Program-made: the position numbers and the translations under genes | The notes under the pieces: model-generated | Told to the model about the DNA's origin: nothing | The model's database searches: none | The model's input: the letters and a program-made list of their open reading frames with translations, nothing else | Assembly: GCF_001194135.2 (NCBI RefSeq) | Contig: NC_068984.1 | Coordinates: forward strand, 100,223,194 to 100,287,193 | Reading direction: 5' to 3' | DNA length: 64,000 bases | Origin: Octopus bimaculoides | Lineage: Eukaryota | In this document: piece by piece, positions 3,802 through 64,000 of the stretch | How the letters are laid out: each line of letters opens with the position of its first letter | Position numbering within the stretch: position 1 is the stretch's first letter

Positions 3802-6800
3802 TACTAATATGGAATTTGTTAAATTTCTGTATGAAACATACATTACCACATTAATTTGATAATACATAAGTACTACTAAACAAGGGAACTCCATTACAGA
3901 AGGGTCAACAAAATCTTTCTTAAATAATGCTCTACATTATTAAAAAGGGAAAACTAAGGATGTACTGAATAAGATAGTCCAAGATGAGATGCTCAACAGA
4001 AGTTGACTCAACAGCTACTTAGACTAAGCACAATGTCTTAGATATTGTAGTCCTAGGCACACTGTTTGAAGAAAGGTGCTAAGGTCATAGATCAAACAGC
4101 TTTATCTGATCCATGTGAAACTATTTGATCATAACTGACCTGGGGCTCAACCAACAACCTGCCTCACCTGACTTTGTAACAGAAGTAATGCCATTCTCAT
4201 GGAAACTCTACCAATGCAGTTATCATCATGAAGAACAGAAACTGTTATGTTATTTTATCTTGGAAATCATGGTTAGTCATGTAGGATTTTTTTCCGTGTC
4301 AAAAAGATATGGCAGGAATTTTGAGTTGCCAAATCTAAAAAAAGGAATTCTAACAAAAGTATAAGACCACACATTTTGATGGAAAGATCAATTGATTTTA
4401 TGATAATGAGGTTGTGAGTTCTGTTGCTGAACTGGATAGTGCATTGTGTTGTTGAGCAAGGTAGTTCATTTCATATTGCCGCAGGATACTCAGCTGTAAA
4501 TGACTACCAATCTAGTGCTGATGCAGACCTCTCTGTCCTTCCAGCTGTCACATTTTGGATATTTTACTGGGTTGAGTGTGAGAGAACTGAGAAGGAACCT
4601 GCATTTGCTCACATCTACAAAGATACCAGAAATAATTAGTGAATTAGTACATATTGCTTTCTACTATGGGCATAAAAGCCTGAAACTTAGTGGGAGGGGC
4701 TAGTCAATAACATCAACTCCAGTGCTTGACTGGTTCTTATTTTATGGACCCCCAAGAGGATGAAAGGCAAAACTGACCTCAGTGGAACTTGAACTCAGAA
4801 TGTAAAGATATATGAAATGCTGCTTAGCATTTTGGCCAGTGTGTTTACAATTCTACCAGCTCATTGCCTTGAAAGCAAAGTACATACTACCAAGCGATAT
4901 TGTCAGTGATGGCTATGCAGAACAATATTACCTAAGAAAAGACAATTATTTTATTGTCTTTTCTCATGTAACTCTTCTGACCTACCAAAAGGATGAAGGA
5001 CAAAGTAAAAATCGGTGGAATTTTGAAGTTGGATCATAAGCAAGTATACAAGCAAATACTGAAGTGCATGTTATCTATTGCTCAACCAATTCTACCATCC
5101 AAACATGTTATTGTAGTAGTAGTTGTAAATCAAGAATAGGAAGCCCCTCACTCATGGCTACAATTGTACCTGCATTTAAATTTTATGCTAACCTCTAACA
5201 AAGTTTCTGAACATTCAAATAATAGAAAACAGTTTAAATACTGAGACAAAAGCAGTGCTTTAATATGTTACATATCTGGATTTGTAAAATGAAAAATTTG
5301 TTATTTTTCTCAGCTCCAATAGATCATTAAAAGTTGCTTCACTCCTGTTGTAAATGAACAAATTACATTAACTTTAGAATGTAGTAACAATGCAAAGAAA
5401 TCACTGTATCAGCCAAACTACTGGATGTTATACACAACTGGCTACAATGTACTTTTTTGCAATGTTGTAGCTTTCAAATGATGGTATTTTGCAGGGAAAA
5501 AAGAGATGGTCTTGGTTGCAAGTTTCCTTCAGAAATCGTGGTGATAAAAAGAAACTGAGCCCTAAATATTGTTACAAATCCAGCTTTAAATCCAAGTAAT
5601 ATAATAACAAAATGTTCTTTAAAAACAAAAAGCATATCTATAAGCAGCTGTAGTGTGCAAGACTGTACTGGTGCAGATATGTGATGCATATGAAGGATGA
5701 CGATTAGGTGTACCACAACATGTGCCAGACAATCTGTAGTTCACAGAAGAAGAAAATCAACAGAGATGTGGCAAGAAGTGATCATAGGATGCTGAACTTT
5801 ATAGAAATGAAGGTGACAGTAAATAATGATGATATCTGCTATACAAGGTGTACCGAAAGGCAGACATCATTAAATTTCTATTATTTCAAATCACATCTTT
5901 TCAAAGTTCAATGGTACTTGGCACTTGGTTTATTATTTGTATATATATGTGTGTGTGTGTATGTGTGTAAGCATATACACATACATACACACAAGTATTT
6001 TGAATATTATAGAAGTGCTGCCTTTCAGTGTAAAAAAAAAAAGAAGCTTAATAATCAACATTTCAAAAGAGAGCTAGTATTTGGTCACTTAACATTTCTT
6101 TGGTTCAGTGCTCTCCTAGTCAAAAATCACCATCACCAATATCAGAGAACTATTAATTTTTAGAGATGGACATGTACTGTACTATCAAAAGTTCAATTCT
6201 CTACAGAGTTTCCCTTTCTCCTTAGATATGATTTTTATCTTGTGTAAGTACCAGTTAAATACTAAGGTTGGCTTGATAATGATGGTCTCAGGATGTGGTT
6301 TCGAAAGTGCACAGTGGCAAGATACAGGGTAACTGAATGTGCTGTCACAGGAAGGCAAAAATCACAACTTTTTATAGTGGTACTATTAAAAAGTAGTCAA
6401 TCCTTCATACTTATTACCTTAAAATGATGCACCAAGAGGAGTAGAGGGCATATAAATACATAGACACACATATACACACACACACACAGACACACGCATG
6501 CACATCAAGCAATAAAGACCAACTCAAATGCCATTATATTTTGGTTAAAGCTCATATTTTCTAAAAAAAAAAAAAAAAGTGAAATATAAGAAGAATCAGT
6601 TGTTTTTTGGGAGCCTTTGATGGGTTACGGTGAGTACAGATGTAATTGTTGGCACCTTGGATGACGAGACTAATATAGCTTCACCTTGCATCGTGCTTTT
6701 TCTTTGTTGACATGTGAGAAATATTAAGTCAGAGTTATCATGAATTATTCTTGGTTTATCCAACAGGATATATAAAATACAAAAGAATAAAAACAAAAAT

Positions 6801-6807
6801 TATAACA

Positions 6808-6907
6808 TATATATATATATATATGCATGCATATATGTATATATATTCATGTATATATGTGTATGTGTATATATATATATATATGCATGTATGTGTATAT
6901 ATATTAC

Positions 6908-6943
<36 letters not shown>

Positions 6944-7118
6944 TTATGTGTATGTATGTATTTATATATATATTTTTTTGTTTTTATATGTATATTTTAT
7001 ATATATACATATATATATGTATGTGTGTGTGTATTTATATATATATTTATATATATACACATGTATTTGTATTTATATATGTACATATATACATGTATTT
7101 TTTTTTATATGTATATTT

Positions 7119-7151
<33 letters not shown>

Positions 7152-7258
7152 ATTTATATATATATATATATATACACATGTATTTGTATTTATATATGTA
7201 CATATATACATGTATTTGTATATGTATTTTTATATATATGTATATGTGTATGTATATC
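6808..7258. repeat. Compound (TA)n/(TG)n microsatellite with an internal duplication of about 50 nt
   Basis: Direct reading; the block tatatacacatgtatttgtatttatatatgtacatatatacatgtattt occurs twice. Confidence 0.95.
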
Positions 7259-8101
7259 AGTGTGGAGTGAAAATCAATACAATTCAAACAAAAATACCCT
7301 GCAGTATTCATATCCAACCGAGTGATATCTCCGCTTACGCAAATGTTGACTTCACATTTTGTATCATATAAGAAAGATGAAATTTGTACCAGATAAAGTA
7401 CTGAGGTCGATATATTTGACTAAAACACATGAAGGCAGTGCCCAGCATGGCTGCAGTCCAATGACTGAAATCAGTGAAAGAAGAATAAAAAAGAAAAGAA
7501 AAGAGAAAAAAGCCTTTTTAATTACAGTAAAAATTTTTTTCACAAATTACTTATTTTCTCAGTGACAATGTCGGTCATTATGCTGTAAATTGGGGATTTC
7601 ATTAGAGAAAGAGACATTCTCAATAATTAGACACTAATTAATGAATGGCGTAAGTAATGTGAAGGTTGGAATTCAAAGATGATGAAAGTTCTTTAAGACA
7701 ATTTACAGGTATCATGAGAAGAAATGGAAAAATTTTCCATTTCAAAATGCAAAACTGAATTTTCATCACATTTCATCTTATGGAAGGAGAGAATAAAGGA
7801 AAAAAAAAAAAAAAGAAAAAAGCTGGTACAATTTTTTTGTTTTTTGTTTTGTTTTGAAAGCAGTATCTGCATAAGAAATTTAAGAACAATAAGTGAGAGT
7901 GGTTGTTGATGATAAATAATTTATGAGAAGATAGAAATCTTTTGCAAATTGTGACATTACAAACAGTAAAGAAGGAATTAAATGCTTGTTAAATTTCTAG
8001 AAATAAATTAATGAAGTTGACAGAATCTGCTACTACCCCTGACTTAATAAAGCAGTACACCCACTTGAAGCATTTTAAAAAAAAAATATGATGAAGTTAG
8101 A

Positions 8102-8660
8102 NNNNNNNNNNNNNNNNNNNNNNNNNNNNNNNNNNNNNNNNNNNNNNNNNNNNNNNNNNNNNNNNNNNNNNNNNNNNNNNNNNNNNNNNNNNNNNNNNNN
8201 NNNNNNNNNNNNNNNNNNNNNNNNNNNNNNNNNNNNNNNNNNNNNNNNNNNNNNNNNNNNNNNNNNNNNNNNNNNNNNNNNNNNNNNNNNNNNNNNNNNN
8301 NNNNNNNNNNNNNNNNNNNNNNNNNNNNNNNNNNNNNNNNNNNNNNNNNNNNNNNNNNNNNNNNNNNNNNNNNNNNNNNNNNNNNNNNNNNNNNNNNNNN
8401 NNNNNNNNNNNNNNNNNNNNNNNNNNNNNNNNNNNNNNNNNNNNNNNNNNNNNNNNNNNNNNNNNNNNNNNNNNNNNNNNNNNNNNNNNNNNNNNNNNNN
8501 NNNNNNNNNNNNNNNNNNNNNNNNNNNNNNNNNNNNNNNNNNNNNNNNNNNNNNNNNNNNNNNNNNNNNNNNNNNNNNNNNNNNNNNNNNNNNNNNNNNN
8601 NNNNNNNNNNNNNNNNNNNNNNNNNNNNNNNNNNNNNNNNNNNNNNNNNNNNNNNNNNNA
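8102..8660. other. Assembly gap (N run)
   Basis: Run of n. Confidence 1.
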
Positions 8661-8739: not shown

Positions 8740-10095
8740 TTAGGCACAAGGCCAACAATTTTAAAGGGAAGGGGAGAGGAGCCTAGCAGATACCACTGAC
8801 CCCAGAACTAAATTGGTATTTTATTTGATTAATCCTGGAGGGATGAAAAGCAAAGGAGACTTTGGTGGGATTAGAACTCAGAATATCAAGAACATTCTGT
8901 TCAATGCTCTAACAATTCCACTATCTAGCTGTTCTAATAATAGTAATAATAATGATGATGATAATAATAATAATAATAATAATAATCTTTTCTACTTTAG
9001 GCACAAGGCCTAAATCTTTTTGTGGGGATAGATTAGTTGATTACATCAGCCCCCAGTAATTATCTGGTACTTATTTCATTGACCCTGAAAGGGAAAAGGC
9101 AAAGTCAACCTCGGCAATATTTGAACTCAGAAAGGTGGTGAGCTGGCAGAATCGTTAGCACACCAGGCAAAACACTCAGTGGTATTTTGTCCATCTTTGT
9201 TCTAAGTTCAAATTCCACTGAGGTCGGCTTTGCCTTTCATCCCCTTCTGGGTTGATAAAATAAGTACCAGTTGAGCACTGGGGTCGATGTAAACAATTTT
9301 CCCCCATCTCGAAATTGCTGGCCTTGTGCCAAAATGTGAAACCAATATTTGAACTCAGAACATTAAAGATGGATGAAATGCTGCTAAGCATTTTGTCTAG
9401 TATGTTAACAATTCTGCCAGCTTGCCATCTTAACAACAATAATAGTAATAATAAGGGATTCAAATTTTGGCACAAAGCCAGCTGGCTTGGGGGAGGAGCT
9501 AAGTTGATTACATCAACTTCAGTGTTCAACTGATACTTATTTTATCAACCCTGAAAGGATGAAAGGCAAAGTTGACTTTGATAAAATCTGATTCAGAACA
9601 AAGATGGATGAAATACTGTTAAGCATTTTGTCTGGTGTACTAACGATTCTACCAGCTCACCACAGTAATAATACTAATAATGAAAATTGTTTCAAATTAT
9701 TGCACAAGACCAGTAATTTAATAGGTGGGTGGGTGTTAGTCCATTACCATTGACCTCAATATTTGGCTAGTACTTTATCATATTGCCCCCAACAGGATGA
9801 AAGGCAAAGTTGACCTTGATGCAATTAATCTCAGAATGTACACAACAAAATATAAGCAAGGCATTATGTCCCACACTAACGATTCTGCCAATCCACCACC
9901 CTAATAATAATCCTTTCTATTAAAGGCTCAAGGCCTGAAATTTTGGGGGCTGGGAGTTGTCGATTACATTGGTCCCAGTGCTTGACTGCTATTTTTATCA
10001 ACCATGAAAGGACAAAAGGTAAAGTCACTCTTAGCAGAATTCTTGAACTCAGAATGTAAAAATGGACAAACTGCTGCTAAGCACAATGCCTTAAT
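8740..10095 (-). mobile_element. Head-to-tail array of about 5 family A SINE copies
   Basis: Five successive cacaag(g/a/c)c...ggatgaaa(g/a)gcaaag...gaactcagaa...ttctgcca units, mostly preceded by (AAT)n. Confidence 0.7.
9133..9343 (+). mobile_element. Family A SINE inserted antisense into another family A copy, with an 18-bp target-site duplication
   Basis: caatatttgaactcagaa at 9115-9132 and again at 9343-9360 flanks a full-length plus-strand copy. Confidence 0.8.
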
Positions 10096-10790: not shown

Positions 10791-12288
10791 AGTTTTAACA
10801 AAAGGAAAGTGATAGGTTTGTCAGAACTGAATACCATGGAATGAATAATAACAATGTTCAGTTGAGGTTTTGCTCATAACTTAATAATCAACAGTAACAC
10901 ATGGTAACAATTAATAACTTCAAGTTAGTGTCATCAACACTAACAAACAGCTATTTATAAAGCAATTTATTATTAATAATAATTGTTTCAAGTTTTGCCA
11001 CAAGGCCAACAATTTCGAGGATAGCGTACATCAATTACATAAACCCCAATGCTCAACTTGTACTTATTTTATCAACCCCAAAAGGATGAAAGGTAAAGTT
11101 GACCTTGACGGAATTTGAACTCAGAATGTGAAGATGAACAAAATGCCACTAAGCATTTTGAGTGGCATCCTAACAACTCTGCGAGTTCAATAATAATAGT
11201 AATAATAATAATAATAGTGATAATAATAATTTCTAACAGAAACACAAGGCTACATCCAGCAGGAAGAAACAATTCACTAATGATAAAAATATAATGATAA
11301 TCTTCTGAGATGTGAATGGAGGGGATTAGTTATTTAAATTGATCCCAGTGCTTGACTGGTACTATAATGAACTCTGGAAGAATAAAAGTTAGACAACAAC
11401 CAGATTTAAACTTAGAATGGGAAGAACCAGAACAATACTGCATTTTTTATTCTATTATACCTTCTGGTAATTATCTTAAAAAGGATGAAAAATAACATTG
11501 ATGTTGGTGAGATTTGAACTCAGAACATGACATGTCAGAACTAAATACTACAAAGCATTTCATCCAATTGTTATCAAAAGTAATCTTGTGCCTTGATCAG
11601 AAATCTGTATAACTAATTCTTCAACAGAAGGTTGTAACAGAAACATTTCTTAAACAAGAGTGTCTACAAATATAGACTCATTAACAAACATTTAAGTGAG
11701 CAGGGAATAGAAACAGATTTACATGCAAGTTGGTTCTAACGTAGTTGACCTTAGGTGTTAAGAGTCAAGGACAAAATGCCATGCAGTATTAGTTCTGGCT
11801 TTCACAGTTCAAATCCCACTCAGGTTAACTTTGTCTCAGATAATTTTGGAGTTAATAAAATAAAGTCCCAGTTCAGAGCAGTGGACTGGGAAAACAGTTA
11901 GAACATCAGATGAAATGCTTGTCCCAGGAGTTTATCAATATGAATTACTTAAGAGGGAGATCATATCCCTTCATCCAGTTTAACACCAGCACCTGATCTT
12001 TTAGTAAAGTTCACTGTTGTAAGTATTGAAATCAGATCTCTGGTTTCACTATAATTTTCTCTCTGAAACACATCAATGTCAGAGGCATAGAAAAATAAAG
12101 GGCCATGCCCCTTATTCTGTGACTAAATGGTAAAAAAATAAATCTGGTCAGAATGCAACACAATATGTTTAATAATTTACCCATAACAGAATAAGAACAA
12201 TCATGTGTTGGTGAAGAAGGATCAGTAAGGTTCACAATAAGGGTATGTAAGTCGTGTTTGAAAGGGTTGATCAATATAAGTTAATATC

Positions 12289-16048: not shown

Positions 16049-16628
16049 GAGTAAGCACATAAATGCAAAACAAGGTGGAAAAAATAGTACTCAAATACCA
16101 GAGGTAGAGTAATATGCTTTATTAAAAAGCAGCAAAAATATCACAAAAGCTGTTACTCAGAGTTTCACGTTCCTGTTCGTCAGACAGTTTTGTTAAGAAT
16201 GGAACAAAAATAATGTTATAAGCAAACATATACAATTAGTTTAATAGATACCCATTTGAAAATGGTTTTGTTTCATTGGTCCTTTCAACTAATGGTCTTT
16301 ACAATGACCGGTTGCATGCAATGAACAAACTTTGGTATAAAATCAAAGAAAACCTCAAATCATTTGATTTTGATTTAATATAAGCTATTTTTGATATAAA
16401 GTTTTCTTCGATTTTATACCGAAATTTGTTCATTGCATGCAACCTGTCATTGTAAAGACCGTTATTTGAAACGACCAATGAAACAAAACCATTTTCAAAT
16501 GGGTATCTACTAAACTAATTGTATATGTTTGCTTATAACCTTATTTTTGTTCCATTCCTGTCCAACGAACAGGAAAGTGAAGCTCTGAGTAACAGTTTTT
16601 GTGATATTTTTGCTGCTTTTTAATAAAG
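16049..16628. mobile_element. Penelope-like-element-type terminal repeat in inverted (tail-to-tail) arrangement
   Basis: Arms 16117-16353 and 16401-16628 are reverse complements with about a dozen substitutions and one 9-nt indel; each arm carries a hammerhead-like motif, a known feature of PLE pseudo-LTRs. Confidence 0.6.
16145..16191 (-). ncRNA. Minimal type I hammerhead ribozyme motif
   Basis: Minus strand reads AAAACTGT-CTGACGA-ACAGGAACGT-GAAA-CTCTGAG-TA-ACAGCTTTT: intact CUGANGA and GAAA core, palindromic stem III, GUA cleavage triplet, stem I CTGT/ACAG. Confidence 0.65.
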
Positions 16629-23302: not shown

Positions 23303-23849
23303 TCAGCTAAATCTGTGTGGAAATGAACTCTTCATTTGCTGATCTGTTCGCAATGAACACTGGTGGGTGCTTGTTGTGGAGGAGTGAAGTTCACTAACTC
23401 GCTATACAATGAACGGATGTTCACAAACCTGCTTGAATTCATTAGACACCAGTCTATTCTTATTGCTTTCCATGTCTCTTAGTCGATATAAATTAGGGGG
23501 CTAATAATAATGATAATAATAATAATAATCATAATAATGTTTCCTCCTTTATAAAGATATATGAAAGACAAAGGGTCGAAGGTTACTTTATGTTTCCACA
23601 TCTCACTTTTCTGATAACTGTCCTCCTCTTTGTAGTTTTGCTTCTTTACATTTCACCTGGTTTTTTTCCTACATTTTGAACATTTTCTTACTGACACCAC
23701 AACCATTTTCATCCAGTATTCATTCTAATTTTGTATGCACATATTAATAATGTTATCTGAAAAGAAAAAGAAAAAACAAGAGAATAGTTATGATACAGAT
23801 ATACTATACATGTATGCATTTAATTTATAATGCATAATGTAAAAAAAGT

Positions 23850-23990: not shown

Positions 23991-24811
23991 TATTCATTAT
24001 TCAAGAATGTATCAGTTTTGAATAATGACAGTAAGCCTCAGCTTCAAATAAATGAAGCTATTCAAACTCTCTCACACATGCACACATACATACACAAGTA
24101 AGAGATAAAGACATATTTGATGTTAAATTATATCTAATACATGGAATACAGATGATGATGATGATAAACTGAACTAAAACAACAATCTGCAAAGCAACAA
24201 TATCAAAACACACATATGTAAAATTGTAAATCTCTGATTTTGATGATTAGGATTCAGTTGATCAATCATCTGAATTAACCACTCCCGAATTAAAGGTTTC
24301 AAAATGTTGGCACAAAAGTATTCAATTCAGAGGAGAGGGTTAAGTCAATTGCATCAACCCCAGGGCTCAACTGGTACTTATTTTATCAACCTCCAAAAAG
24401 ATGAAAGGCGAAGTTGACTTTGGTGGAATTTGAACTCAGAACATAAGGACGGATGAAGTGCTGTTAGGCAAGCAGAGACTGCTTTGTTGACTCAAATTCA
24501 ATAGCAATTGCCATCAAGTTTGGTGAGATTAAGCTCAAGCAAACTAATAAGTTCTATGTCATTAGTATGTTGGCGATGGGGGAGTGGGGTAGGAAGTGAG
24601 AATAAAAAGCAACTTACTCTGACATCAGGGTATGTTTCGATAAGCAATGTGTTGTCTCCATGCCTGAGATTCCTGAATGACATCACAAACTTTGATGGCT
24701 AAGAAAAAAAAAAAAGAGCACAACCAACATTAAACATCAGGCAGACAAAAGATCAAAACAGATTGAACACTTATACACACGGCTTATGAACGTGTGTATT
24801 TATATATATAT

Positions 24812-24870
24812 NNNNNNNNNNNNNNNNNNNNNNNNNNNNNNNNNNNNNNNNNNNNNNNNNNNNNNNNNNN
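24812..24870. other. Assembly gap (N run)
   Basis: Run of n. Confidence 1.
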
Positions 24871-25772: not shown

Positions 25773-25919
25773 TTAACATTCAGTCTTATATTCAGAGAGT
25801 GTACCTAGGATCTTATCCAATGTGTCTTTCCTTTTATAAACAGGCATGGTGTAATTTAAAGCCGATATTATTACTCTTTCTGAGGGGATTAATGAACACA
25901 TAGGAGCTCCCTTACTGTG
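25773..25919 (-). CDS. MPHOSPH8: Probable terminal coding exon of the MPP8-like gene (HSKGAPMCSLIP...SEYKTEC*)
   Basis: Acceptor ctcttttcttccactaaaacttaattaccag; length and weak motifs (CSLIP, YKTE) fit the end of the MPP8 C-terminal domain; reading frame uncertain. Confidence 0.45.
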   Translation of the reverse strand, partial: HSKGAPMCSLIPSERVIISALNYTMPVYKRKDTLDKILGTLSEYKTEC

Positions 25920-25992
25920 CTGGTAATTAAGTTTTAGTGGAAGAAAAGAGGACACGCCCACCCACTTCAAAAACAAGCTAAATGTTACTTAC

Positions 25993-26031
25993 CAAGGATA
26001 CTTGTTTCTCTAAAACACCATTCAACCACAC
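25993..26031 (-). CDS. MPHOSPH8: 39-nt exon of the MPP8-like gene (VWLNGVLEKQVSL)
   Basis: atctcag acceptor and TTG|gtaagt donor; the phase-0 frame resembles MPP8 VVLNDKFQLPVFL as recalled. Confidence 0.6.
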
Positions 26032-26244
26032 CTGAGATACCACAGATTCTCCTTTTAGCCTGCAACCAATTTGTAGTGCTGCTATGTCGTTGACGTGGAC
26101 CAGAAACAGAAGGTAACCTTCATCTACAAAGTAAAATAGAGAAAATCCGAAATGTAAACAATATTAATAAACACATTTTCAAAACAGTGATCTAAATCGA
26201 TAAGACATTTTATTTTCAAGATTAAACATTTCATTTTTTAATAC

Positions 26245-26400
26245 CTTTTTCTTTGGCATCCCTATGTCTGGTGAGACCATGAACTGACTTTAATCTAGGA
26301 CAGTTAAAGTGCAGTGAGGTAACATTAGAGTGTTGTATCCAAAAAGCAGTCATCAATACGAATCTCCTCTCTAAAGACACAAGCCAGTACAGCTTGGCAC
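26245..26400 (-). CDS. MPHOSPH8: Probable exon of the MPP8-like gene (CAKLYWLVSLERRFVLMTAFW...CPRLKSVH...)
   Basis: atacag acceptor and AAG|gtatta donor; the only fully open frame matches the phase-1 upstream exon; 3' boundary uncertain. Confidence 0.5.
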
Positions 26401-26484
26401 CTGTATTATCACACAACTAGCTCCTTCCTAAGCCATTTAAACTAATAGGGCTAGATTGTTGATTTCTGTGGCATATGTACTCCC

Positions 26485-26640
26485 CACTGGATGGGACACC
26501 AGTCTGTCACAGGAATACTTGTTTTTGCCAGTTGAGTGGACTGGAGAAACATGAAATGAAGTGTTTTACTGAAGAACACAACACATAGCTTGGTCCAGGA
26601 ATTGAAACCACATTCCAACACCCTAACCACTAAGCCACAA
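26485..26640 (-). mobile_element. Family C SINE in an intron
   Basis: Minus-strand head TGGCTTAGTGGTTAG ... GGTTTCAATTCC; gtgttcttcagtaaaacacttcatttc. Confidence 0.6.
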
Positions 26641-26992
26641 GACTTGCCAGAAGAAATTTGTATCAATTCTGAAGGACTGATGAAAACAGTGACCTTGGTG
26701 GGATTTGAATCTAAAGTGTACAAAGCAGAAGCAAATACTTCAAGGTATTTTTTGTCCAATGGTCTAAAGCTACTGCTATTAACCATCCCTTTACTTAATA
26801 TTAACACCTACACTAACAATGAAGTTAATAAATAACTCAATGTAGTTACCTCAGATATTTAACAAATAGATCTGGACTATACCTACTTGATTGATTGGCT
26901 ACTGACATTTCATAAATGTCTATGACACTCAATCAGAGCTGACCTCAAACTATACAACAAACAACAAATATATAAACAGTTGAACAACTTAC

Positions 26993-27144
26993 AGTAAGTA
27001 CATTCCTTCACAATGTGACGAAATGAAATTTGGATTTTTCGGCTTTTAGCAAGAGACATACACTGCAGAGGAAAAACCTCTTCCAATAGTGTGTTCTGTT
27101 CACCAAGCCAGTTCTTAATGCACTGATTCATTTGGTTAGAAATC
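26993..27144 (-). CDS. MPHOSPH8: MPP8-like exon after the ankyrin repeats (ISNQMNQCIKNWLGEQNTLLEEVFPLQCMSLAK...)
   Basis: tttttccag acceptor and TACT|gtaagt donor; phase 2 in matches the upstream exon; LLEEVFPLQC parallels MPP8 LLEPVFPIAC. Confidence 0.85.
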
Positions 27145-27735
27145 CTGGAAAAAAAAAAGCAAACAAAAAAACATAAAATAACATAGTTAAATCATATGAA
27201 GAGGGTACTTGACTTAAATGTGTTAAATTTTGTTGGCTTAAACTGAAGTTAATGAAGAGGTAGAAGTACTGTTAATGACTTGTAAAATGAACAAATAAAC
27301 TAAAAAAATTGCTGTAAGAATTACCTCCCTTGAGCAATTACTAGGTTACGAAGCTTAAAACATTATGAACAAGGAAAATTCTATCTGGGGCTGGATCGTC
27401 TGCACAAGATCGGTTTAAAGTAAACTGACAACCTGTAGTAAGCAGAAAAACTATATGCTAGCCACAGTTAGAATCAGTGTTAGGATCCAATGGAACTAAC
27501 ACACAGCTTGGTTTAACACCACCATCTGATACTTAGCTGCCTTTAGTAGATTTCACACTGTTGCAAACGTAGACTAGTTAAAGTCTCTGCCAACATTTTG
27601 GACAGTGTAAAATAGTTTGGTATCAAAAGAACTAATAAAAAGAAATTCCAAACTGATAGAGAAAAATATATAAATCTTGGCTTGGGAAATAGGTGTTGAG
27701 GATATATAAATTTAAAATATCAAAAGACAACTTAC

Positions 27736-27980
27736 TTTTCACTGTAACTGGAAAGAAGGCTCTCTATATCACTGAGGCTTGGATTTTTACTGGCTAAATC
27801 CAAAGAATTTAAGTTGTCCTTGTTTTGAAAACCAATATTAGCACCATGGTCCAGTAGTAATTTCACTATGTGAATATTGCCACTCAAGACAGATTTTATT
27901 AACGCCGTTTCTTTGTTTGTTGTATATTTCTCTAGGTTAGCGCCCAACTTTACGAGGACTTCCACAGCTTCTACTTCACC
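27736..27980 (-). CDS. MPHOSPH8: MPP8-like ankyrin-repeat exon (GEVEAVEVLVKLGAN...ETALIKSVLSGNIHIVKLLLDHGAN...)
   Basis: ttgcag acceptor and GAAAA|gtaagt donor; canonical ankyrin motifs TAL/GA(N/D). Confidence 0.92.
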
Positions 27981-28152
27981 CTGCAATCATGACAAAGTAA
28001 GGATAATTATTTTAAAACAATACAGTTTTAAACAGTTAAATAATACTATATTTTATTGGCTACAAGGGTCCATCAGTACAAAAAGAGTTACAAAACATCA
28101 CACACTTTAATCAGTATTTATTTCATTTACGCTTATATCAAGTAGGCTACCA

Positions 28153-28617
28153 TTTAAATTCCTGTCCAGGTTGTCAGATTAATAAAATAAATACTTTGAT
28201 AAAATTACTGACACCTTGAAGTTGGTGCCCCATTGACTAGAATGAATAAAAATAGTTAAAAAGAAGGAAAAAAAACTAGCAACAACTGAACAATACTTGC
28301 AAGATGCTGAATGCAATCACTAGGTATTTTTGCACATGCTTTCTCACTTCCACAATGTCCAATCTACATTTAGACAGATAAAGTGTACCTCCACATGTAA
28401 ACTGAACTAGCAAGAGCTACACTGTCTTTGTCCTGCATACAGTGCAGAGTAGATAGTGAAATCCACATCAACTAGCATACTACAAATACTCATTTAAATT
28501 TTTTTATTTTAAACTATTTTTTATTAGTTCTAATAAACTTCATAGTGTCAATAATATTGACCGAGTAATTAACAGCTATTTATTTTATTAATCTGTTGAC
28601 CTGGACAGGAATTTAAA
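28153..28617. repeat. Intronic inverted repeat pair
   Basis: 28153-28193 and 28577-28617 are reverse complements at 38 of 41 positions, with weaker similarity extending inward. Confidence 0.75.
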
Positions 28618-29996
28618 CTCAGAGCATAAAGTGACACATTGTAAGACATCTGATGTTACATTTTACCAATTTTGCTATTGCCCATTTATTATAATAAACA
28701 TGAAATTTTGTCTGTCCGTCCGTCTGGGGCCCCTGTATCTCAGTCTACATTTGCTCTACATAGACATATACCTTTTTGGAATCGGGATTATCCTAGGATT
28801 GAAAATCTCCCTTTGATTTAGTTCTTGAACATCCAGCATTGGGATCAGGTCTGGATGAGGATTTGTTATATACTAACAGTTGAAAATTCAAATTTTAAAA
28901 GAATTCCAAAAAGTTGTGAGCATACAAGGTTTTTATTTAAACTGAATGTAATACCATAACTTTGTGAATTCAAAAACTATTTTCAATTTAATTCATTTAA
29001 AATTAGATCCAAGTTAAAGTGAGAGGTTTTGAAATTCCAAAGTTTGTGAATTGAAGGAAATATTGAAGAACTCGAACTTTCGGCCCAAATTGGACTTTCA
29101 ACTAGATTGGACTTCTGGCCAGATTGGACTTTTTGCAGAGTCAGGTTATCCAGAGATTTGGATGCTGGAAGATTTGCAGCTCAGCTACTGGATCTGGGAA
29201 ATGGAAGTATTCAGCAAGACAGAAATGGAGACATCACTTATTCCAGACTGACTGGATAAAGATAGCTCAGAGAGAAGAAAATAAATGACGGCTTGCATTT
29301 ATTTGAACTGGACCTTACAGCATATTGGGTAAATCATTGCGAACAAGCTGAACCAAAAATGTCACCAGGTTCTTGAGAATCTTTAACAAAGTTCACTCTG
29401 TTGAAAGCATTTGGTCCAGGTGCTCTGGCCCATGTCTGTCCTGCAGACACTCAAACTGGACAGAACCAAATTGATTTGATTAATCTCAAATGTGATAGGT
29501 ACCAGGCTTCTTTATATGACTTATTTAATAAGAGAAAAAATTTGAGAAGGGTATATGCCTAACATTCAGTTATTTCTTTACTGAAGTTGCCCACCATGTT
29601 TTTCCTCCAGGTATTCAGGCTTAACCCCTAAAGCATTTTAAACTGGTTCTACCTGGCCCAAATATTCTCCCTGTTTTATGCTCAAACTGGCTAGATCCAG
29701 TTCTTTACACCTATCTTATGGTGTCATTCCAAAAATAAACAAATACCTCTTCAAAATATTTATGCTACAAGTTAATGCATGGTTAATTCAAAACAATGTG
29801 AATAAAAAAAACATTAAACAAAATAATCTGAATGCTGAACGGTTAATAACCACATCAATCTCAGCAGTCTAGGTAGCCTGTAAAAAACACAGGCAGTGCC
29901 CCACCTCTTCCTACTCCTTTGACTTATGAAAGGGATTTTAAGGCATACAACACAGAAATAAAGAGAGTTACAATATATTTGGAAATGAAATCTTAC

Positions 29997-30094
29997 TCTG
30001 GTACAAGCTAAGGTCAATGCAGTTTCACCAGTACTTAGTTCTTTGTCCAACTGAGCTCCAGCAAGTGCCAACAGTAGTGTAATATCACTGAAAC
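29997..30094 (-). CDS. MPHOSPH8: MPP8-like ankyrin exon (FSDITLLLALAGAQLDKELSTGETALTLACTR)
   Basis: tttttttatcattgacag acceptor and AGA|gtaaga donor; phase 1 in, phase 0 out, joining TALTLACTR|GEVEAV. Confidence 0.92.
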
Positions 30095-30953
30095 CTGTCA
30101 ATGATAAAAAAAAACAAACATATAATGTAGAAAATTATACAATCTTAACCATGGGCCATGGACACAAATGAAGACATCAATCTTTTGGTCACACCACTCA
30201 AAAGTTAATTGTAGCAAGAGCTTTAATCACTCAAACTACAAAACACTTCAAATTACATTTTCAGTTACAACATCAAACCCTCTATCACATGTCATCAGTT
30301 ATGCACAAATTAAGGGTAGCAACATTTTTAGCCTTCTTTAATCATTTCGGGACTAAAAATGACCATTTCTGTTTGTTAGGAAAAAAAAATCTTCAAATTA
30401 TATAAAAAGAGCTACATAATAAACTACATAGGAATTTTTAATTTGCTGCCAATTGTTCTCAGCCTTTCATTAGAAGCCGTTTGCAGTCAAATGGACTGAG
30501 CCATTGGAGAGTTTCATGTTTCATGGCCATTGGATGCATCACAGTGGTGGATGCAATATATGAACTGACAACTATTCTGTTACTCTTTTCACTCAACCAC
30601 CTAAAATATGAAAGTTTAAATATCTATCTGCACAACAACATACTGATGTGACACCGGTAGAGCAGTACAGTATTTCTTTCCAGAGAAATACCAAATTCAT
30701 TACGACTACTTCTTGCCACTTAGACTGTAATAAAGCCACAAATTTGCAATAGAGGTGGGAAAGAGCCAATGGGATCTTAAAAAAAAAAAGTTAACCAACT
30801 TTAATCCAATAAAACATTGAAGTTTTAAATACCAATAATACTGCTAAGGTTTAAAGCAATCACCTATAGCCTTGTTTCTCATATAGCACAAATTTATATC
30901 GCATGCTATGACGGAAAACCTCTACCTAAATATAAGGTCTCAGAACAACTTAC

Positions 30954-31088
30954 CTCTCAAGATGGATTGCATTATTAATGTGTAGCCACCGCTGTTTGGA
31001 GATTCTAGATCATATCTCCAACGGTCTCCTCTCAAAGCAGATTTTAATTTACCATAATCACCTGCTAGTACAGCTTGTGTAAATTCAT
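30954..31088 (-). CDS. MPHOSPH8: MPP8-like exon, first ankyrin region (EFTQAVLAGDYGKLKSALRGDRWRYDLESPNSGGYTLIMQSILR)
   Basis: tttcaatttcag acceptor and GAG|gtaagt donor; parallels the MPP8 'AVKNGDY...KVAL...Y.L...SG.TL.M' segment as recalled. Confidence 0.9.
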
Positions 31089-31897
31089 CTGAAATTGAAA
31101 AATATGAAGTGAATAAAATTTTCAGACAAAATGAAATAAATCTTTTAAAAAAAGCTATACCTTAATTTACATATTTTTGTTTTAGTTTTTCACCTGAAGT
31201 GATGCATTAAGTTACTGAGAAAATTCACTTGGTAGACACCTAAATACTTTCTCTGTGAAAATCTCCAATGAAATGTTGATCTAAATGAAAACCTGTTTAA
31301 CATGGACCAGGGATAATTCTAGCTCTTAAACGCGAGACCACCAAACCAAACGCTCAAATACTTAACCCATAACTGAAGCCTAAAGCTATCTATCCCATAA
31401 GAATGCCAAACTAGAGGAAAACTATAAGGAAAACTATAGGTATCAAATTAATATGAGACGGTCATATACTCAAAGACTGAACTATCTTTGGTTATAGGTC
31501 AGTTTGACCAGGACATAACCACTAATATATTGCTGAGATCTTTATTAACTGAGATAATATAGAAATATCTGTATTTAATCATAGGTTTTCATTAAGAATA
31601 CCTATGATCGAAGACATTAGTTACAACCATCTCATCTCTTAACCAAACAGTGTATCTTAAGTTACATTAGCCAATGTGTATTTCTGTGAACCTATTCAGA
31701 AATTTGTCAGCTGAAGTCAAACCAATATTATTTATGAAATGAGAATTTCTGTCCCACAAGAATTGCTATAAGAGATCAGTAGGCCCGAAGCTCAATATTT
31801 GTGAGAAACTCCAAACACAGCTATAATGGCATTTAACTGAAGATTGTTCAAAAGTATTTACTTTACACACAAAAGTTAGTAGAAATCATCAACTTAC

Positions 31898-31964
31898 CAT
31901 TGGATAAGTGAAGAACGGTACCATTGGATAACCTTGGTTTTTTGGTTGATGTGGAAGCTGCACT
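31898..31964 (-). CDS. MPHOSPH8: MPP8-like exon (SAASTSTKKPRLSNGTVLHLSN)
   Basis: cttttcatccttgcag acceptor and ATG|gtaagt donor; 67 nt, phase 0 in and phase 1 out, in frame with the next exon; KKPR is NLS-like. Confidence 0.8.
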
Positions 31965-35750: not shown

Positions 35751-35765
35751 NNNNNNNNNNNNNNN
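35751..35765. other. Assembly gap (N run) within a family A SINE
   Basis: Run of n between poly-T and poly-G. Confidence 1.
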
Positions 35766-37290
35766 GGGGGGGGGGTAGGCTAAGTCAACTGTATTGTCCC
35801 CAATGCTCAACTGGTTCTCATTTTATCAAACTTGAAAGGATGAAAGACAAAGTTGACCCCAGCAGAATTTGAACTCAGAACATAAGGATGGACAAAACGC
35901 TGCTAAGCATTTTGCTTGGCATGCTAAAGATTCTGCCAGCTCATTGCCTCTCGATGTGGTTGCTCAACATGCTAGATATAGCAACCTGATCTTTAATATC
36001 TTAAAAAAAACAACCCAAAATACAACCATATTGGACAATATATAGTCCAAGGCATACTAAATAAATGGGTTGGTCATAGTTAGAGTACCTTTGATCATAT
36101 GCATCCTTGATTAGGGCTGATTTAAAGACTACAGAACAACAAGAACTCTTAGAAATAATGTCAGTTATCAACAAAAGAAAGAGCTGTCCCCATCCCCTTA
36201 TCAACTGATATCTCTAAACTGTCATCTTTGGCTTCCTCTCAACAATTCTGCCTTATCAGTTAGTGAAAAACAGATAACAAGGATATGAAAGTGGCAGGAA
36301 GGTGAGGACAAAGACACACAAACAGAACAACCAGGTGGGCAATATCAAATGCAAGGAAATGGACAGAACAGAGATAAGTCAATAAGGCCTGAAGGACAGA
36401 GAATGTGCTATAAATTAAAATACACACACAAACACACACCACGAGGGTGTGGGGATAACAATGTCCCATTTCACATGACCAATAGTCTTTCTACAACTTT
36501 TATTAGTATTTTTTCACACAGACTCATTTGCATATTCACAAGTCTCCACTAAGCTTCCTATTTGTCTCTGTGTCAGACAAACTTATGCACTGTAATTCAG
36601 GATGAGATGAGATAGGCCAGCCACAAGCCAACTAATGCTTTGCTAGTGAAACTTAATAAACAAACTGTGCTGAAAACCATCATGTGTACGCATGCATATA
36701 CATGTGTATGGTTGTGTCAATGTTTAACAGTGAAAGCTGGTGTGCTTAATTGTATCACTTTCATCCCCGCTGCTTTGTCAAAAACATTTTTAAGCTGTTG
36801 AATGTAAGAAGAAATGTGTTTAAGAGAAAATAAACACCCAATTGAAATTGTAAACTGAGGTCGATATGATTCACTAAAAACCTTTGAAGACTACAGCCAA
36901 CTGACTGAAACCAGCTAAAGGGTATGACACCAGTTTTATATGAAGTAACATTAATAAAGAGATCTGGTGTTACATAGTTCTCTTCAGATAATATTCTTCA
37001 AATATTCTGGTGCCATGGCTTCAGTAAACTGAAGTAATGTAGAATAAAATGCTCTAGTCAGAAACAATAAACATCTATAGGAGAATTGAACTTCAGGTCT
37101 TTAAGCTGGTAGCTCAATTCCTTAGACAATTGGTCTCCTCAACTTTACACATGAGTGGCAACAGAGAGAGAGAGAGAGAGGCTAACAAAGACAGATCAAA
37201 TTGTAAACAATGGCTTAGTCATGTACACAAATTCAAATTAGCTAATTAGAAAATAAAATACATAAATCAATCATTCTATGGAAGGAGAGA

Positions 37291-37390
<100 letters not shown>

Positions 37391-37405: not shown

Positions 37406-37488
37406 CTCATAGTCTCGTGACCTTTCCGACCTTCGATAACAGCAACAAAAATTTGTTAATTCTTCTGTTGTACAAGCATCAAAGAAAT
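37406..37488 (-). CDS. Candidate internal exon (FFDACTTEELTNFCCCYRRSERSRDYE)
   Basis: Strong acceptor ttttttcattatttttccag; only the phase-1 frame is open, matching the donor at 53941; weak GAG|gtagtg donor gives phase 0, matching the exon at 31964. Confidence 0.6.
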
Positions 37489-53940: not shown

Positions 53941-54783
53941 TTCGGACAATTTTGTTCCTTATGGATATTAAAGGGTTCTGAAGCTTTAAAAGAGCACTCA
54001 TTTCCCATCGGTTAGAAGTTCCGAGAGAGCTTTTAGAATTATTATACATTCCATAAGTCTGGTCAGTCAAAGAATATCCACTTGCATTTGAAGACGCAAG
54101 TGACTGTTTCGATACAGAATTTCCTTCAGGACACATGTCCGTCGTTGATCGACATGCTTTGATCTTGGAAGCGTAACGGTTGTTAATGCTTCCATATTTG
54201 TCTTCTGTTGATGACAGTTTGGAATCTGTGTTGAGCTCATCACATGGCAATAATAACTGACTATTACTATTACTGTTATTGCTACTACTACACATAGGAG
54301 TGAGCAGATCAGAAACAAACAAACAGGGTTCTGATATAACATTATCCTCTTCTAGTAAACTCACACTTCCAGTGTCTTGTGGGGTCATTGATCGTGATAT
54401 TGACACTGTCGATGCCACGGACTCCAGCCCTGGAGAATTACTGTCCATTTCAGTTTCGGTTTCGTTTCTTAAGCTAGACACTCCACTATCAACACTGCTT
54501 TCTCCCACTGCAAATATATTGCAACTAGTCTTTTCAGGAGGCAACGAATTCATCGTAGTCCTCATCGTCCTTTTCGGAGGTGTCCGTAGGTTTTGAAATT
54601 TAGTTTTTTTCCGTTTTGAAGAATAACTTATTACTATGTTTCTATTTGGCTTTAGGCGAGTTCTTCGTTTTTTGGCAAGACAATGTGGAGGGTCTTTCGA
54701 GTTCTGATGATGCACTGCCGAGGATGGCGATGAAGATGGTGTCGAGAGGTTATCACAGTCACAATGCTGACTTGACGCATCAC
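53941..54783 (-). CDS. Large internal exon encoding a Ser-rich, largely disordered region with basic NLS-like clusters
   Basis: 843-nt open frame (contains ORF 53894-54715); acceptor tttctttatttctag and donor CGAA|gtaagt; phase 1 at both ends; KKRRTRLK and KRKKTK motifs. Confidence 0.85.
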
Positions 54784-61849: not shown

Positions 61850-62500
61850 TAATTAGTAACAATTCTATTTTATTTTATACTCTATTGTTATTATATTATT
61901 GCAGCAAGTTGGCAGAATCTTTAACAAGGCATTTCTTCTAGTTTTACATTCTGAGTTCGAATCCCACCGAGGTGCATTTTGCCTTTCATCCTTCCAGAAT
62001 TGATAAAATAACTGTTTAGTACTGGGGCCAAGGTAGTCAACTATGCCCCTCCCCACAATTTTTAGGATTTACACCTATAGTAGAAAAGATTATTATTATT
62101 ATAAAGGTAGGAAGATGGCAGAATTTTTAACAGGCTGGACAAAATGCTAAGCCTTGTTTCTTCTAGCTTTATATTCTGAGTTCGAAGTTGATAAGATAAA
62201 TACCAGTCAAACAATGAAGTCAATGTGACAAATAAGCCCTAGTACCCATAGTAAAAAGAATTATTATCATTTCTTTTTTAAGGCACTGAGCTGGCAGGAT
62301 CGTTAGCCCGCTGGGCAAAATGCCTAACAGCATTTCATCCATCTTTACATTCTGAGTTCAAATTCTGTAGAGGATGACTTTGCCTTTCATCCTTTCAGGG
62401 TCGATGAAATAAGTACCGCTACGAACTGAGGATTGACTTCCCCCACCCACCAAAAAATTTCAGGCCTCGTATCTATAGCAGAAAGGATTATTATTATTAT
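61850..62500 (+). mobile_element. Tandem plus-strand family A SINE copies
   Basis: Three successive ggcagaat...ctgagttc...ctttcatcc...gtagaaaag units with (ATT)n tails. Confidence 0.7.
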
Positions 62501-62668: not shown

Positions 62669-64000
62669 GTTCTGAGTTCGAGGTTGGTAAGATAAATACC
62701 AGTCAAACACTGAAGTCAATGTGACCAATAAGCCCTAGTACCCATAATTTCAGGCCTTCCACCTATAGTAGAAAGAATTATTATCATTTCTTTTTTAAGG
62801 CACTGAGCTGGCAGAATCGTTATTATTATTATTATTGTTATTATTATGTGGCAAGCAGGCAGAATCATTAACACACAGAACAAAATGCTGAACAGCATCA
62901 TTCTTCTGGCTCTTTATAGCCACCAAAATCAACTTTGCTTTTCATCTTTCCTAGGCACTACTACTTTTAAAAACTATTACAGTAAAGACAGAACTGGAAT
63001 CTGAGTTCAAATCCCTCTGGAGCTTTCTTTCTTTTAACTGCAGGTTGTTCTAATCACTACTCGTTAGCCCCTACTTATCAAACCTATGATCAAAGATGTT
63101 CCAACTATGACCATCTTCAGACATTAACATCACTGTCTGAGGAGCCCAGAAATAGTTTGTTACCACATGAACAACAGTGACGATAATTTTGTGCATAGAC
63201 ACAAGGCCAAATGTTGAGAGAAGAACCAAATATATAGACTCATGATTTCACTGGTATTTTGTCTTATTGATTACAGAAGTCAATACAAAAAGTTAATCCT
63301 GGAAAGATTTGGACTCAGAATGTAATACAGCAATTTTGAAGAAAGGGTGTCAGTCAATATTATTGACCCTAACATTTAACTGGTTCAGCAACCCCAAAAA
63401 GATGAAAAGCAAAGTTGATCTTGGTAGGAGTTGAACACAGAATGTAAAGAGACATTACTACTAAATACCACTAGGCATTTTCTCCAATGCTTTAAAAATG
63501 TTGCCAATCCCCTAACATGTATATAAATGAATAATATAGGCATAGGTTTGATATTTTGGAGAAGGAATAGTCAATTAGTAGAATCCTAGTAGTTGATTGG
63601 TACAATTTTAATAAATTCGGGAATCTATATATATAAAAATGAGAATGTGTGTCTGTCTGTCTGTGTGTGTGTGTGTGAATCCCTAAAACTCGAGAACTAC
63701 GCAACCAATTTCATTCAAATTTTACAGATGCCTTACTTAGGGTTCCAGTTGTGTTTTAGTCAAAAAAATTTTTTAACTTCTTGCAGAGTTCGAGCCCAAG
63801 GCAACATAATATCTCCTCCACTATTTAAGTATTACGTGTCAAAAGTGAAACAAAAACACTCATGTCAAATACTTTCACTTAAAAAATGAAACTATTCCAC
63901 TAACTGAAAGAATCACATTTCTATACTGTAATGACAGATACATTCAGAGAGAGATGTATATGTATACATATAGATGTATATGTACACGTATATGTATAGA

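Follow-up and report, generated by a model that had tools for sequence, protein, structure and literature searches.

The window analysed here, 64,000 nucleotides of the Octopus bimaculoides genome, carries on its minus strand a gene that is almost certainly the O. bimaculoides orthologue of MPP8 (MPHOSPH8), which in vertebrates reads chromatin as a subunit of the HUSH silencing complex. The gene is not new: it is an ordinary, already annotated gene with a model in RefSeq, GenBank and UniProt, named “uncharacterized protein” in the O. bimaculoides record and already MPP8-like in O. vulgaris. The window holds its 3′ two-thirds, namely 10 exons with GT-AG introns and consistent phases that span positions 54783 to 23709. 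Translated, they give 626 amino acids that match residues 400-1025 of RefSeq protein XP_052823274.1 (LOC106867328) letter for letter. The LOC106867328 gene is 143 kb long, also on the minus strand, and its chromodomain exons are found upstream, outside the window. A previous reading made from the sequence only had called the genome octopus-like; the translation is exactly that of O. bimaculoides and differs from those of O. sinensis and O. vulgaris.

The first exon of the window (53941..54783; all exons are on the minus strand) codes residues 400-679 (tblastn 96% over residues 400-694), has an AG acceptor and a GT donor, and translates to a stretch found unchanged in XP_052823274.1. The central region that it encodes is serine-rich and of low complexity, with patches of basic residues (KKRR/KRKK); its counterpart in MPP8 is the disordered linker. 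The 3′ end of this exon is homologous to an upstream exon in the transcript contig of another cephalopod. Exon 37406..37488 (residues 680-707, NFFDACTTEELTNFCCCYRRSERSRDYE) is defined by its splice sites and its exact match to XP_052823274.1; a (GT)42 microsatellite begins ~30 nt past its donor. Exon 31898..31964 (residues 708-729, SAASTSTKKPRLSNGTVLHLSN; splice sites and exact-substring translation) codes an extended segment immediately N-terminal to the ankyrin repeats, which by its position may be analogous to the human segment described in bioRxiv 10.1101/2023.12.21.572340. The repeats are encoded by exons 30954..31088 (residues 730-774; repeat 1, the cap with GDY..LKSAL, then the first part of repeat 2; helices 14-23, 26-34 and 52-58 in the AF2 model), 29997..30094 (residues 775-807; repeats 2-3; splice sites and exact-substring translation) and 27736..27980 (residues 808-888; repeats 3-5, then the beginning of the long helix alpha10; Pfam matches Ank_2, Ank and Ank_3). 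Exon 26993..27144 (residues 889-939), identified by its splice sites and by alignment to 8qfb_B, completes alpha10 (…LLEEVFPLQC…) and opens the PINIT-like sandwich with its first beta strands; the sandwich core (YLLFLVHV…CRLKGESVV…LNG), in which L, F, G and N columns are invariant across the family, is found in exon 25993..26123 (residues 940-983). The two last coding exons, 24618..24698 (residues 984-1010, PSKFVMSFRNLRHGDNTLLIETYPDVR) and 23709..23756 (residues 1011-1025, ITLLICAYKIRMNTG, followed by a TGA stop), complete the protein, and the product of the latter lines up with human MPP8 at its C-terminal strand (KLLIGAYRVQL).

This gene model extends the one drawn in the sequence-only reading. 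The five peptide strings quoted there are all translated from the minus strand of the window (31089-31033, 30987-30952/30092-30054, 30029-29997/27980-27936, 27911-27837 and 27143-27060), and the three junctions proposed (ILRG|FSDIT, ACTR|GEVEAV and SYSEK|ISNQ) have canonical AG/GT sites and consistent phases. The spliced peptides are not due to chance because their product is an exact substring of the RefSeq protein. The upper limit of the interval given (25773-31964) is a true acceptor, while at the lower one an ORF stops (25988-25776) that is not used as an exon, the real exon nearby being 26123-25993. The exon starting at 27144 was ended at 27060 and actually reaches 26993, 67 nt further. 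Two terminal exons below the interval (24698-24618 and 23756-23709) and two upstream (37488-37406 and 54783-53941) had been missed.

The family assignment is carried by the region that follows the ankyrin repeats. Its 153 amino acids have human MPP8 (8qfb_B, E 6.8e-11) as sole match in the PDB, with query residues 9-150 aligned to 193-335 of the 336 residues of that chain, at its C-terminus; the octopus sandwich thereby has its sequence homologue in residues 741-860 of human MPP8. The 210 amino acid peptide that includes the repeats matches 8qfb_B in one 77-bit stretch (query residues 25-210), whereas ankyrin-1 is ahead only by summed repeats (best single stretch 46 bits). A HMMER scan of 1.84 billion representative sequences with the PINIT-like domain found 18 proteins. 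Wherever the name is specific to a family, it is MPP8 or MPP8-like (proteins from molluscs, a nemertean, echinoderms and sturgeon); those from an annelid, a myriapod and some molluscs are labelled uncharacterized. The domain is positioned at or near the extreme C-terminus in every full-length match except one, Pfam identified an N-terminal Chromo and Ank repeats in 8 of the 9 matches tested, and Octopus is represented by a single cluster. This diagnostic-domain search, carried out in the forward direction only, reaches vertebrate MPP8 (Acipenser). The octopus and sturgeon proteins are collinear, with 32% identity over 291 amino acids in the C-terminal domain (E 3e-37) and 44% in the chromodomain (E 2e-12), and from molluscs to sturgeon family-invariant residues are found throughout both the repeats and the sandwich. 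Both motifs singled out in the sequence-only reading hold: in alignments, GDY..(V/L)K.AL has a counterpart in sturgeon MPP8, and LLE.VFP..C one in both the human and the sturgeon protein. Sequence, architecture and fold all support its proposal of a true orthologue with a likeness exceeding ankyrin consensus.

The full-length octopus protein has an N-terminal chromodomain (PF00385 on record for XP_052823274.1; Pfam Chromo at residues 43-92 of the O. sinensis orthologue, E 8e-13). The PDB matches of this domain include Rhino, CDYL, MPP8, SUV39H1 and HP1. The chromodomain alone is not diagnostic of MPP8 because Drosophila Rhino and CDYL score slightly above human MPP8; as judged from its sequence, it belongs to the H3K9me-reader class.

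Structure prediction of the C-terminal domain, proposed earlier as a check, yielded an AF2 model (pLDDT 89.4, pTM 0.86) with five helix pairs, a helix at residues 159-187 and a beta-sandwich. The best four Foldseek matches were chains of human MPP8 structure 8QFB (E 2.4e-26), which superpose with TM 0.87/0.90 and rmsd 2.4 Å over about 300 columns. The next matches, DARPins, cover the repeats only (~157 residues, TMq about 0.46), and with the whole module as query nothing except 8QFB covers the sandwich among the best 50 matches. The same result was obtained for a squid-like orthologue. As modelled, the C-terminal 310 residues make up the module specific to MPP8, in which five ankyrin repeats are followed by a double-length helix with a PINIT-like beta-sandwich packed onto it.

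The explanation that best accounts for the whole, and in which we have good confidence, is an MPP8 orthologue that would act in HUSH-type retroelement silencing. By homology with human MPP8, the chromodomain would read H3K9me3 or an H3K9-like methyl-lysine, while the ankyrin/PINIT-like module would dock on the SPOC-DomI domains of a TASOR-like scaffold. The two proteins would form a HUSH-type complex recruiting the H3K9 methyltransferase SETDB1, which would reinforce silencing of transcribed retroelements. The human module is both required for TASOR binding and sufficient for it (PMC7532188; bioRxiv 10.1101/2023.12.21.572340), and its octopus counterpart probably binds a TASOR-like protein. 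Whether a HUSH-type complex would silence retroelements in octopus is, in our judgement, evenly balanced, and the HUSH-like module of the sequence-only reading is still a hint. The literature searched reports no binding or silencing data for any invertebrate MPP8. Downstream effectors may differ in octopus because its transposons lack 5mC (PMC9476566).

It is also conceivable, although unlikely, that this genuine MPP8-family protein works in octopus outside any HUSH-type complex, as a methyl-lysine reader acting alone, with another partner for its ankyrin/PINIT-like module, for example a component of the SUMO pathway or a methyltransferase; the three-subunit HUSH retroelement sensor would then be a vertebrate assembly. 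HUSH is still called vertebrate-specific (PMC7532188), the literature searched has no report of periphilin beyond vertebrates, and PINIT domains in other proteins bind SUMOylation substrates. Searches with vertebrate TASOR (a query whose residues 2-224 were matched to 6tl1_A) listed vertebrate proteins only and no octopus TASOR-like protein. Furthermore, a motif of the invertebrate MPP8-like proteins (FWKDLExG…DMYSKVK) is absent from sturgeon MPP8, which suggests lineage-specific partners. Against this stand the invertebrate TASOR-like proteins with DUF3715-SPOC-DomI, reported in general and not for octopus specifically (PMC10578480), which feature exactly the two domains, SPOC and DomI, bound by MPP8. 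The fold of the TASOR-binding module is also conserved entire (TM about 0.9), as are invariant residues across its repeats and sandwich from molluscs to sturgeon.

A decaying or unexpressed gene copy is very improbable. The product name “uncharacterized” in RefSeq would fit such a copy, but the frame is intact over ten exons and every splice site is canonical. Relative to a genomic contig of a related octopod the exons are 96.6% identical without gaps, compared to 78.2% with many gaps in the introns, and the protein is 96-99% identical to the one of O. sinensis region by region. In addition, the single Octopus cluster argues against a decayed copy, and the spliced transcript contig of another cephalopod (68% identity) crosses all C-terminal junctions. 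The octopus gene is, from these sequence comparisons, under purifying selection. A generic ankyrin-repeat protein with mere consensus likeness to MPP8 has practically no chance of being correct: the best PDB matches of the 210 amino acid peptide by summed score are ankyrin-1/2 and DARPins, and Pfam gives only Ank families for the part covered earlier, but this reading is refuted by the PDB match of the non-ankyrin region to MPP8 alone, by the library-wide scan that returned MPP8-type proteins only and by the 8QFB fold match (about 300 residues versus about 157 for DARPins), and the full protein carries a chromodomain.

The presence of relatives in molluscs, annelids, nemerteans, a myriapod and echinoderms makes the MPP8 architecture, including its complete TASOR-binding module, at least as old as the bilaterian ancestor; flies and worms lack MPP8 (PMC9635835). 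This spread complements that of the TASOR-like proteins published across metazoa and renders a HUSH-type pathway directly testable in cephalopods, a test case with repeat-rich genomes whose transposons lack DNA methylation. As the sequence is already public, the value of the locus lies in the question that it raises rather than in its discovery. Our tentative proposal, held at somewhat less than even confidence, is that HUSH did not originate in vertebrates: an MPP8/TASOR-like silencing hub would be assembled in octopus and in most bilaterian lineages, Drosophila and Caenorhabditis would be among those that lost it, and in cephalopods it would police the very abundant retroelements. If so, the hub might also control their independently expanded clustered protocadherin genes (the question of Hagelkruys et al. 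2022).

Human MPP8 (8QFB; chromodomain 3QO2, 3LWE) and the octopus protein have the same domain order: chromodomain, long disordered serine-rich linker, five ankyrin repeats, alpha10 and C-terminal PINIT-like sandwich. The octopus model is about 31% identical to 8QFB (TM 0.87-0.90), and the segments LLE.VFP..C and …LLI.AY… align. The octopus protein is longer (1025 versus 860 amino acids), its linker sequence is unrelated, and after the chromodomain it has the motif FWKDLEEG…DMYSKVK, conserved in invertebrates and absent from sturgeon MPP8, the only vertebrate protein examined for it. TASOR binding is a property of the human C-terminal module; its octopus counterpart is known here from sequence and predicted fold. 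O. vulgaris CAI9721350.1 (“M-phase phosphoprotein 8-like”) and O. sinensis LOC115210952 are the same gene as LOC106867328, with no biological difference. In an older annotation the gene appeared as two models, one N-terminal (“MPP8-like / cec-3-like”) and one C-terminal and uncharacterized. MPP8(-like) names already exist for snails, a bivalve, a nemertean, sea urchins and a sea star (Elysia, Gigantopelta, Mercenaria, Biomphalaria, Lineus, Patiria and Lytechinus/Strongylocentrotus), and uncharacterized relatives are found in Nucella, Batillaria, Capitella and Strigamia. Common to these invertebrate proteins is the C-terminal PINIT-like domain (27-34% identical to the C-terminal domain of octopus), and most also have the Chromo and Ank architecture; the Strigamia record lacks a Pfam chromodomain. 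Divergence within the set is greatest for the two cephalopod sequences (for example YLLFLVHV versus the family consensus LLFIAHA). According to the 8QFB authors, PINIT domains found in the Siz/PIAS SUMO E3 ligases have the beta-sandwich fold class in common with this module. The S. pombe RITS subunit Chp1 (with Tas3) is a functional analogue (Douse et al. 2020), being a chromodomain H3K9me reader linked to a SPOC-containing, RNA-linked silencing complex, but it combines chromodomain and SPOC on one chain and lacks the ankyrin/PINIT-like module.

Four independent lines of evidence (sequence, distribution, architecture and fold) strongly support the gene in the window as MPP8, as the sequence-only reading had rightly proposed. 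The peptides quoted in that reading are all present in the six-frame translation of the minus strand, from 31089 to 27060. The boundary DNA provides canonical acceptors (ending in ag) and donors (starting with gtaag) at its junctions, whose phases join as proposed. These junctions are spanned by P0001, a transcript-derived homologue of 320 aa and 68% identity from another cephalopod (Logan run SRR27666074). The extent first assigned to the gene, 25773-31964, was correct in that exons are found there, but its lower limit was wrong and further exons lie below and upstream. P0001 continues beyond the stop originally chosen, which led to three exon corrections. Following this continuation on the minus strand, the coding exon 27144-26993 is longer than first drawn, the coding exon 26123-25993 replaces the ORF 25988-25776, a further downstream exon is found at 24698-24618 and the last coding exon, 23756-23709, ends with TGA. 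The ORF 25988-25776, which had set the lower limit as a terminal exon, is missing from both the transcript-derived homologue and the RefSeq protein; the true donor is at 25993.

Two upstream coding exons of the minus strand (54783-53941 and 37488-37406) were found using the O. bimaculoides RefSeq protein XP_052823274.1 as a guide. The resulting ten-exon model, whose reading frame is unbroken throughout, yields 626 aa identical to residues 400-1025 of XP_052823274.1 (393-1018 in isoform X2). Neither the O. sinensis nor the O. vulgaris protein contains them exactly, which identifies the window as O. bimaculoides. Residues 1-399, chromodomain included, are without match in the window, where chromodomain exons were found neither by tblastn with residues 1-405 nor with approximate chromodomain sequences. 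LOC106867328 extends over 143.5 kb in assembly GCA_001194135.2 and the chromodomain exons therefore lie upstream, past position 64000. The transcript contig of P0001 (L001, SRR27666074) carries in positions 1-250 a homologue of the 54-kb exon joined to the ankyrin exons in one cephalopod transcript. The frames of the two parts differ, indicating an indel of 1 nt close to a homopolymer run (an assembly error or a polymorphism); owing to this indel, the P0001 call starts at an internal Met. A related octopod genomic contig covers two of the exons and matches them at 96.6% identity with zero gaps; across the introns its identity is 78.2%, with 139 gap columns. At the protein level, O. bimaculoides and O. 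sinensis share 96-99% identity in each region.

An interspersed SINE-like repeat of ~170-185 nt, with zero matches in Rfam and tRNA scans, occurs in both orientations (1906-2089, 4675-4874, 9198-9349, 10978-11189, 24349-24443, 35773-35949, 62276-62417); its copies are 73-83% identical and several lie within MPP8 introns. Downstream of the gene, two 166-nt arms (16197-16362 and 16392-16557) that are 93% complementary and separated by a 29-nt spacer form a near-perfect palindrome; it resembles a foldback or MITE-like element and folds as single-stranded DNA at -150.7 kcal/mol (z = -29.7). A (GT)42 microsatellite (37293-37376) begins ~30 nt beyond the donor that ends exon 37488-37406. Further TA, CA and GA microsatellites are numerous, and a dense TA/CA-rich block (6750-7260) is a source of spurious long ORFs. 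A 118-aa open frame of the minus strand (26451-26807), in the intron that separates exons 26993 and 26123 and outside the gene model, is probably repeat-derived. Runs of N mark assembly gaps at 8102-8659, 24812-24870 and 35751-35765, the second one within the intron directly upstream of exon 24698-24618.

A HMMER scan with the C-terminal, non-ankyrin 153 aa of P0001 matched 18 proteins among 1.84 billion cluster representatives. The closest full-length match is an Octopus cluster that includes O. sinensis LOC115210952, CAI9721350.1 of O. vulgaris, named "M-phase phosphoprotein 8-like", and, under the name "uncharacterized protein", O. bimaculoides LOC106867328 (XP_052823274.1). The domain is at or near the extreme C-terminus of every full-length match except that of the myriapod Strigamia (P0013). 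Matches labelled MPP8 or MPP8-like come from gastropods (Elysia, Gigantopelta, Biomphalaria), the bivalve Mercenaria, the nemertean Lineus, the sea star Patiria, sea urchins (Lytechinus, Strongylocentrotus) and sturgeons. For Nucella, Batillaria, Capitella and Strigamia the names are generic or say "uncharacterized"; a few other matches are unnamed transcripts. An earlier word-indexed homologue search did not go beyond P0001, a read-through fragment and ankyrin proteins of bacteria; it says nothing on the family. Eight of the nine HMMER matches tested with Pfam combine an N-terminal Chromo domain with Ank repeats, among them the representative from Octopus (Chromo at 43-92, E 8e-13), and the O. 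bimaculoides protein has a PF00385 entry of its own. The chromodomain alone was rejected as an MPP8 diagnostic, Rhino and CDYL scoring marginally above MPP8. About 90 residues past the chromodomain, outside the window, XP_052823274.1 carries the motif FWKDLEEGKVDLFETDMYSKVK (residues 185-206). It is kept in MPP8-like proteins of mollusc, nemertean, annelid and echinoderm origin, is lacking in sturgeon MPP8 and may be an invertebrate-specific short linear motif.

The gene model and name are already public and many invertebrate proteins bear MPP8 or MPP8-like labels; the identification is thus right, yet this is an annotated gene and not a discovery. The 2015 O. bimaculoides annotation split the gene into an N-terminal model (XP_014778773-6), named "M-phase phosphoprotein 8-like" or "chromo domain-containing protein cec-3-like", and a separate C-terminal "uncharacterized protein LOC106867328" (XP_014767654/5), whose uninformative name is retained by the current merged 1025-aa model. 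HUSH is still called vertebrate-specific in the research literature searched (PMC7532188). Outside vertebrates, that literature notes only that flies and worms lack MPP8, and raises the question whether octopus protocadherins are a target of a HUSH-like complex; no description of invertebrate MPP8 or HUSH was found in the literature searched. The question whether this cephalopod has a HUSH-like silencing module is a reasonable one.

In the PDB, the post-ankyrin 153 aa match human MPP8 alone (chain 8qfb_B, E 6.8e-11); the alignment extends from the long helix through the last strand at the chain's C-terminus. The motif LLE.VFP..C, pointed out in the sequence-only reading, reads TLLEEVFPLQC in octopus and ALLEPVFPIAC in human, and the GDY..K.AL cap aligns with sturgeon MPP8. 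When a 210-aa peptide was searched against the PDB, MPP8 appeared as one 77-bit stretch (query residues 25-210), preceded by giant ankyrins and DARPins solely through summed repeats. Sturgeon and octopus MPP8 are collinear at both ends, with 44% identity in the chromodomain and 32% over 291 aa in the C-terminal domain (E 3e-37). Structure prediction of the octopus C-terminal 310 aa (AlphaFold2, 15-sequence alignment; pLDDT 89.4, pTM 0.86), a check suggested with the sequence-only reading, gave five helix pairs, a 29-residue helix and, after the repeats, a beta-sandwich. This predicted architecture is the one described for human MPP8 in 8QFB, whose chains are the top four Foldseek PDB matches (E 2.4e-26, TM 0.87/0.90, rmsd 2.4 A, ~300 columns); all later matches are DARPins covering the repeats alone. 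A squid-like orthologue gave the same fold result.

In human cells, MPP8 binds TASOR 354-633 (SPOC and DomI) through residues 547-860, which are necessary and sufficient for the interaction and needed for HUSH repression. Residues 536-562 of human MPP8 were modelled along the SPOC domain, deletions spanning 521-559 abolish repression, and the chromodomain recognises H3K9me3 and H3K9-like methyl-lysines and accelerates repression (PMC7532188; bioRxiv 10.1101/2023.12.21.572340). TASOR-like proteins with DUF3715-SPOC-DomI have been reported in invertebrates (PMC10578480). Searches for an octopus TASOR-like protein with human TASOR 110-640 (in agreement with 6TL1 for part), run singly and as an 8-sequence vertebrate profile, gave vertebrate sequences only among the matches listed. 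The whole C-terminal module is conserved in the octopus gene, with family-invariant residues in repeats and sandwich. Together with the human MPP8-TASOR data and the invertebrate TASOR-like proteins, this conservation suggests as the best-supported mechanism that octopus MPP8 would act, by analogy with its human counterpart, as a reader-adaptor tying H3K9 methylation to a TASOR-like scaffold.
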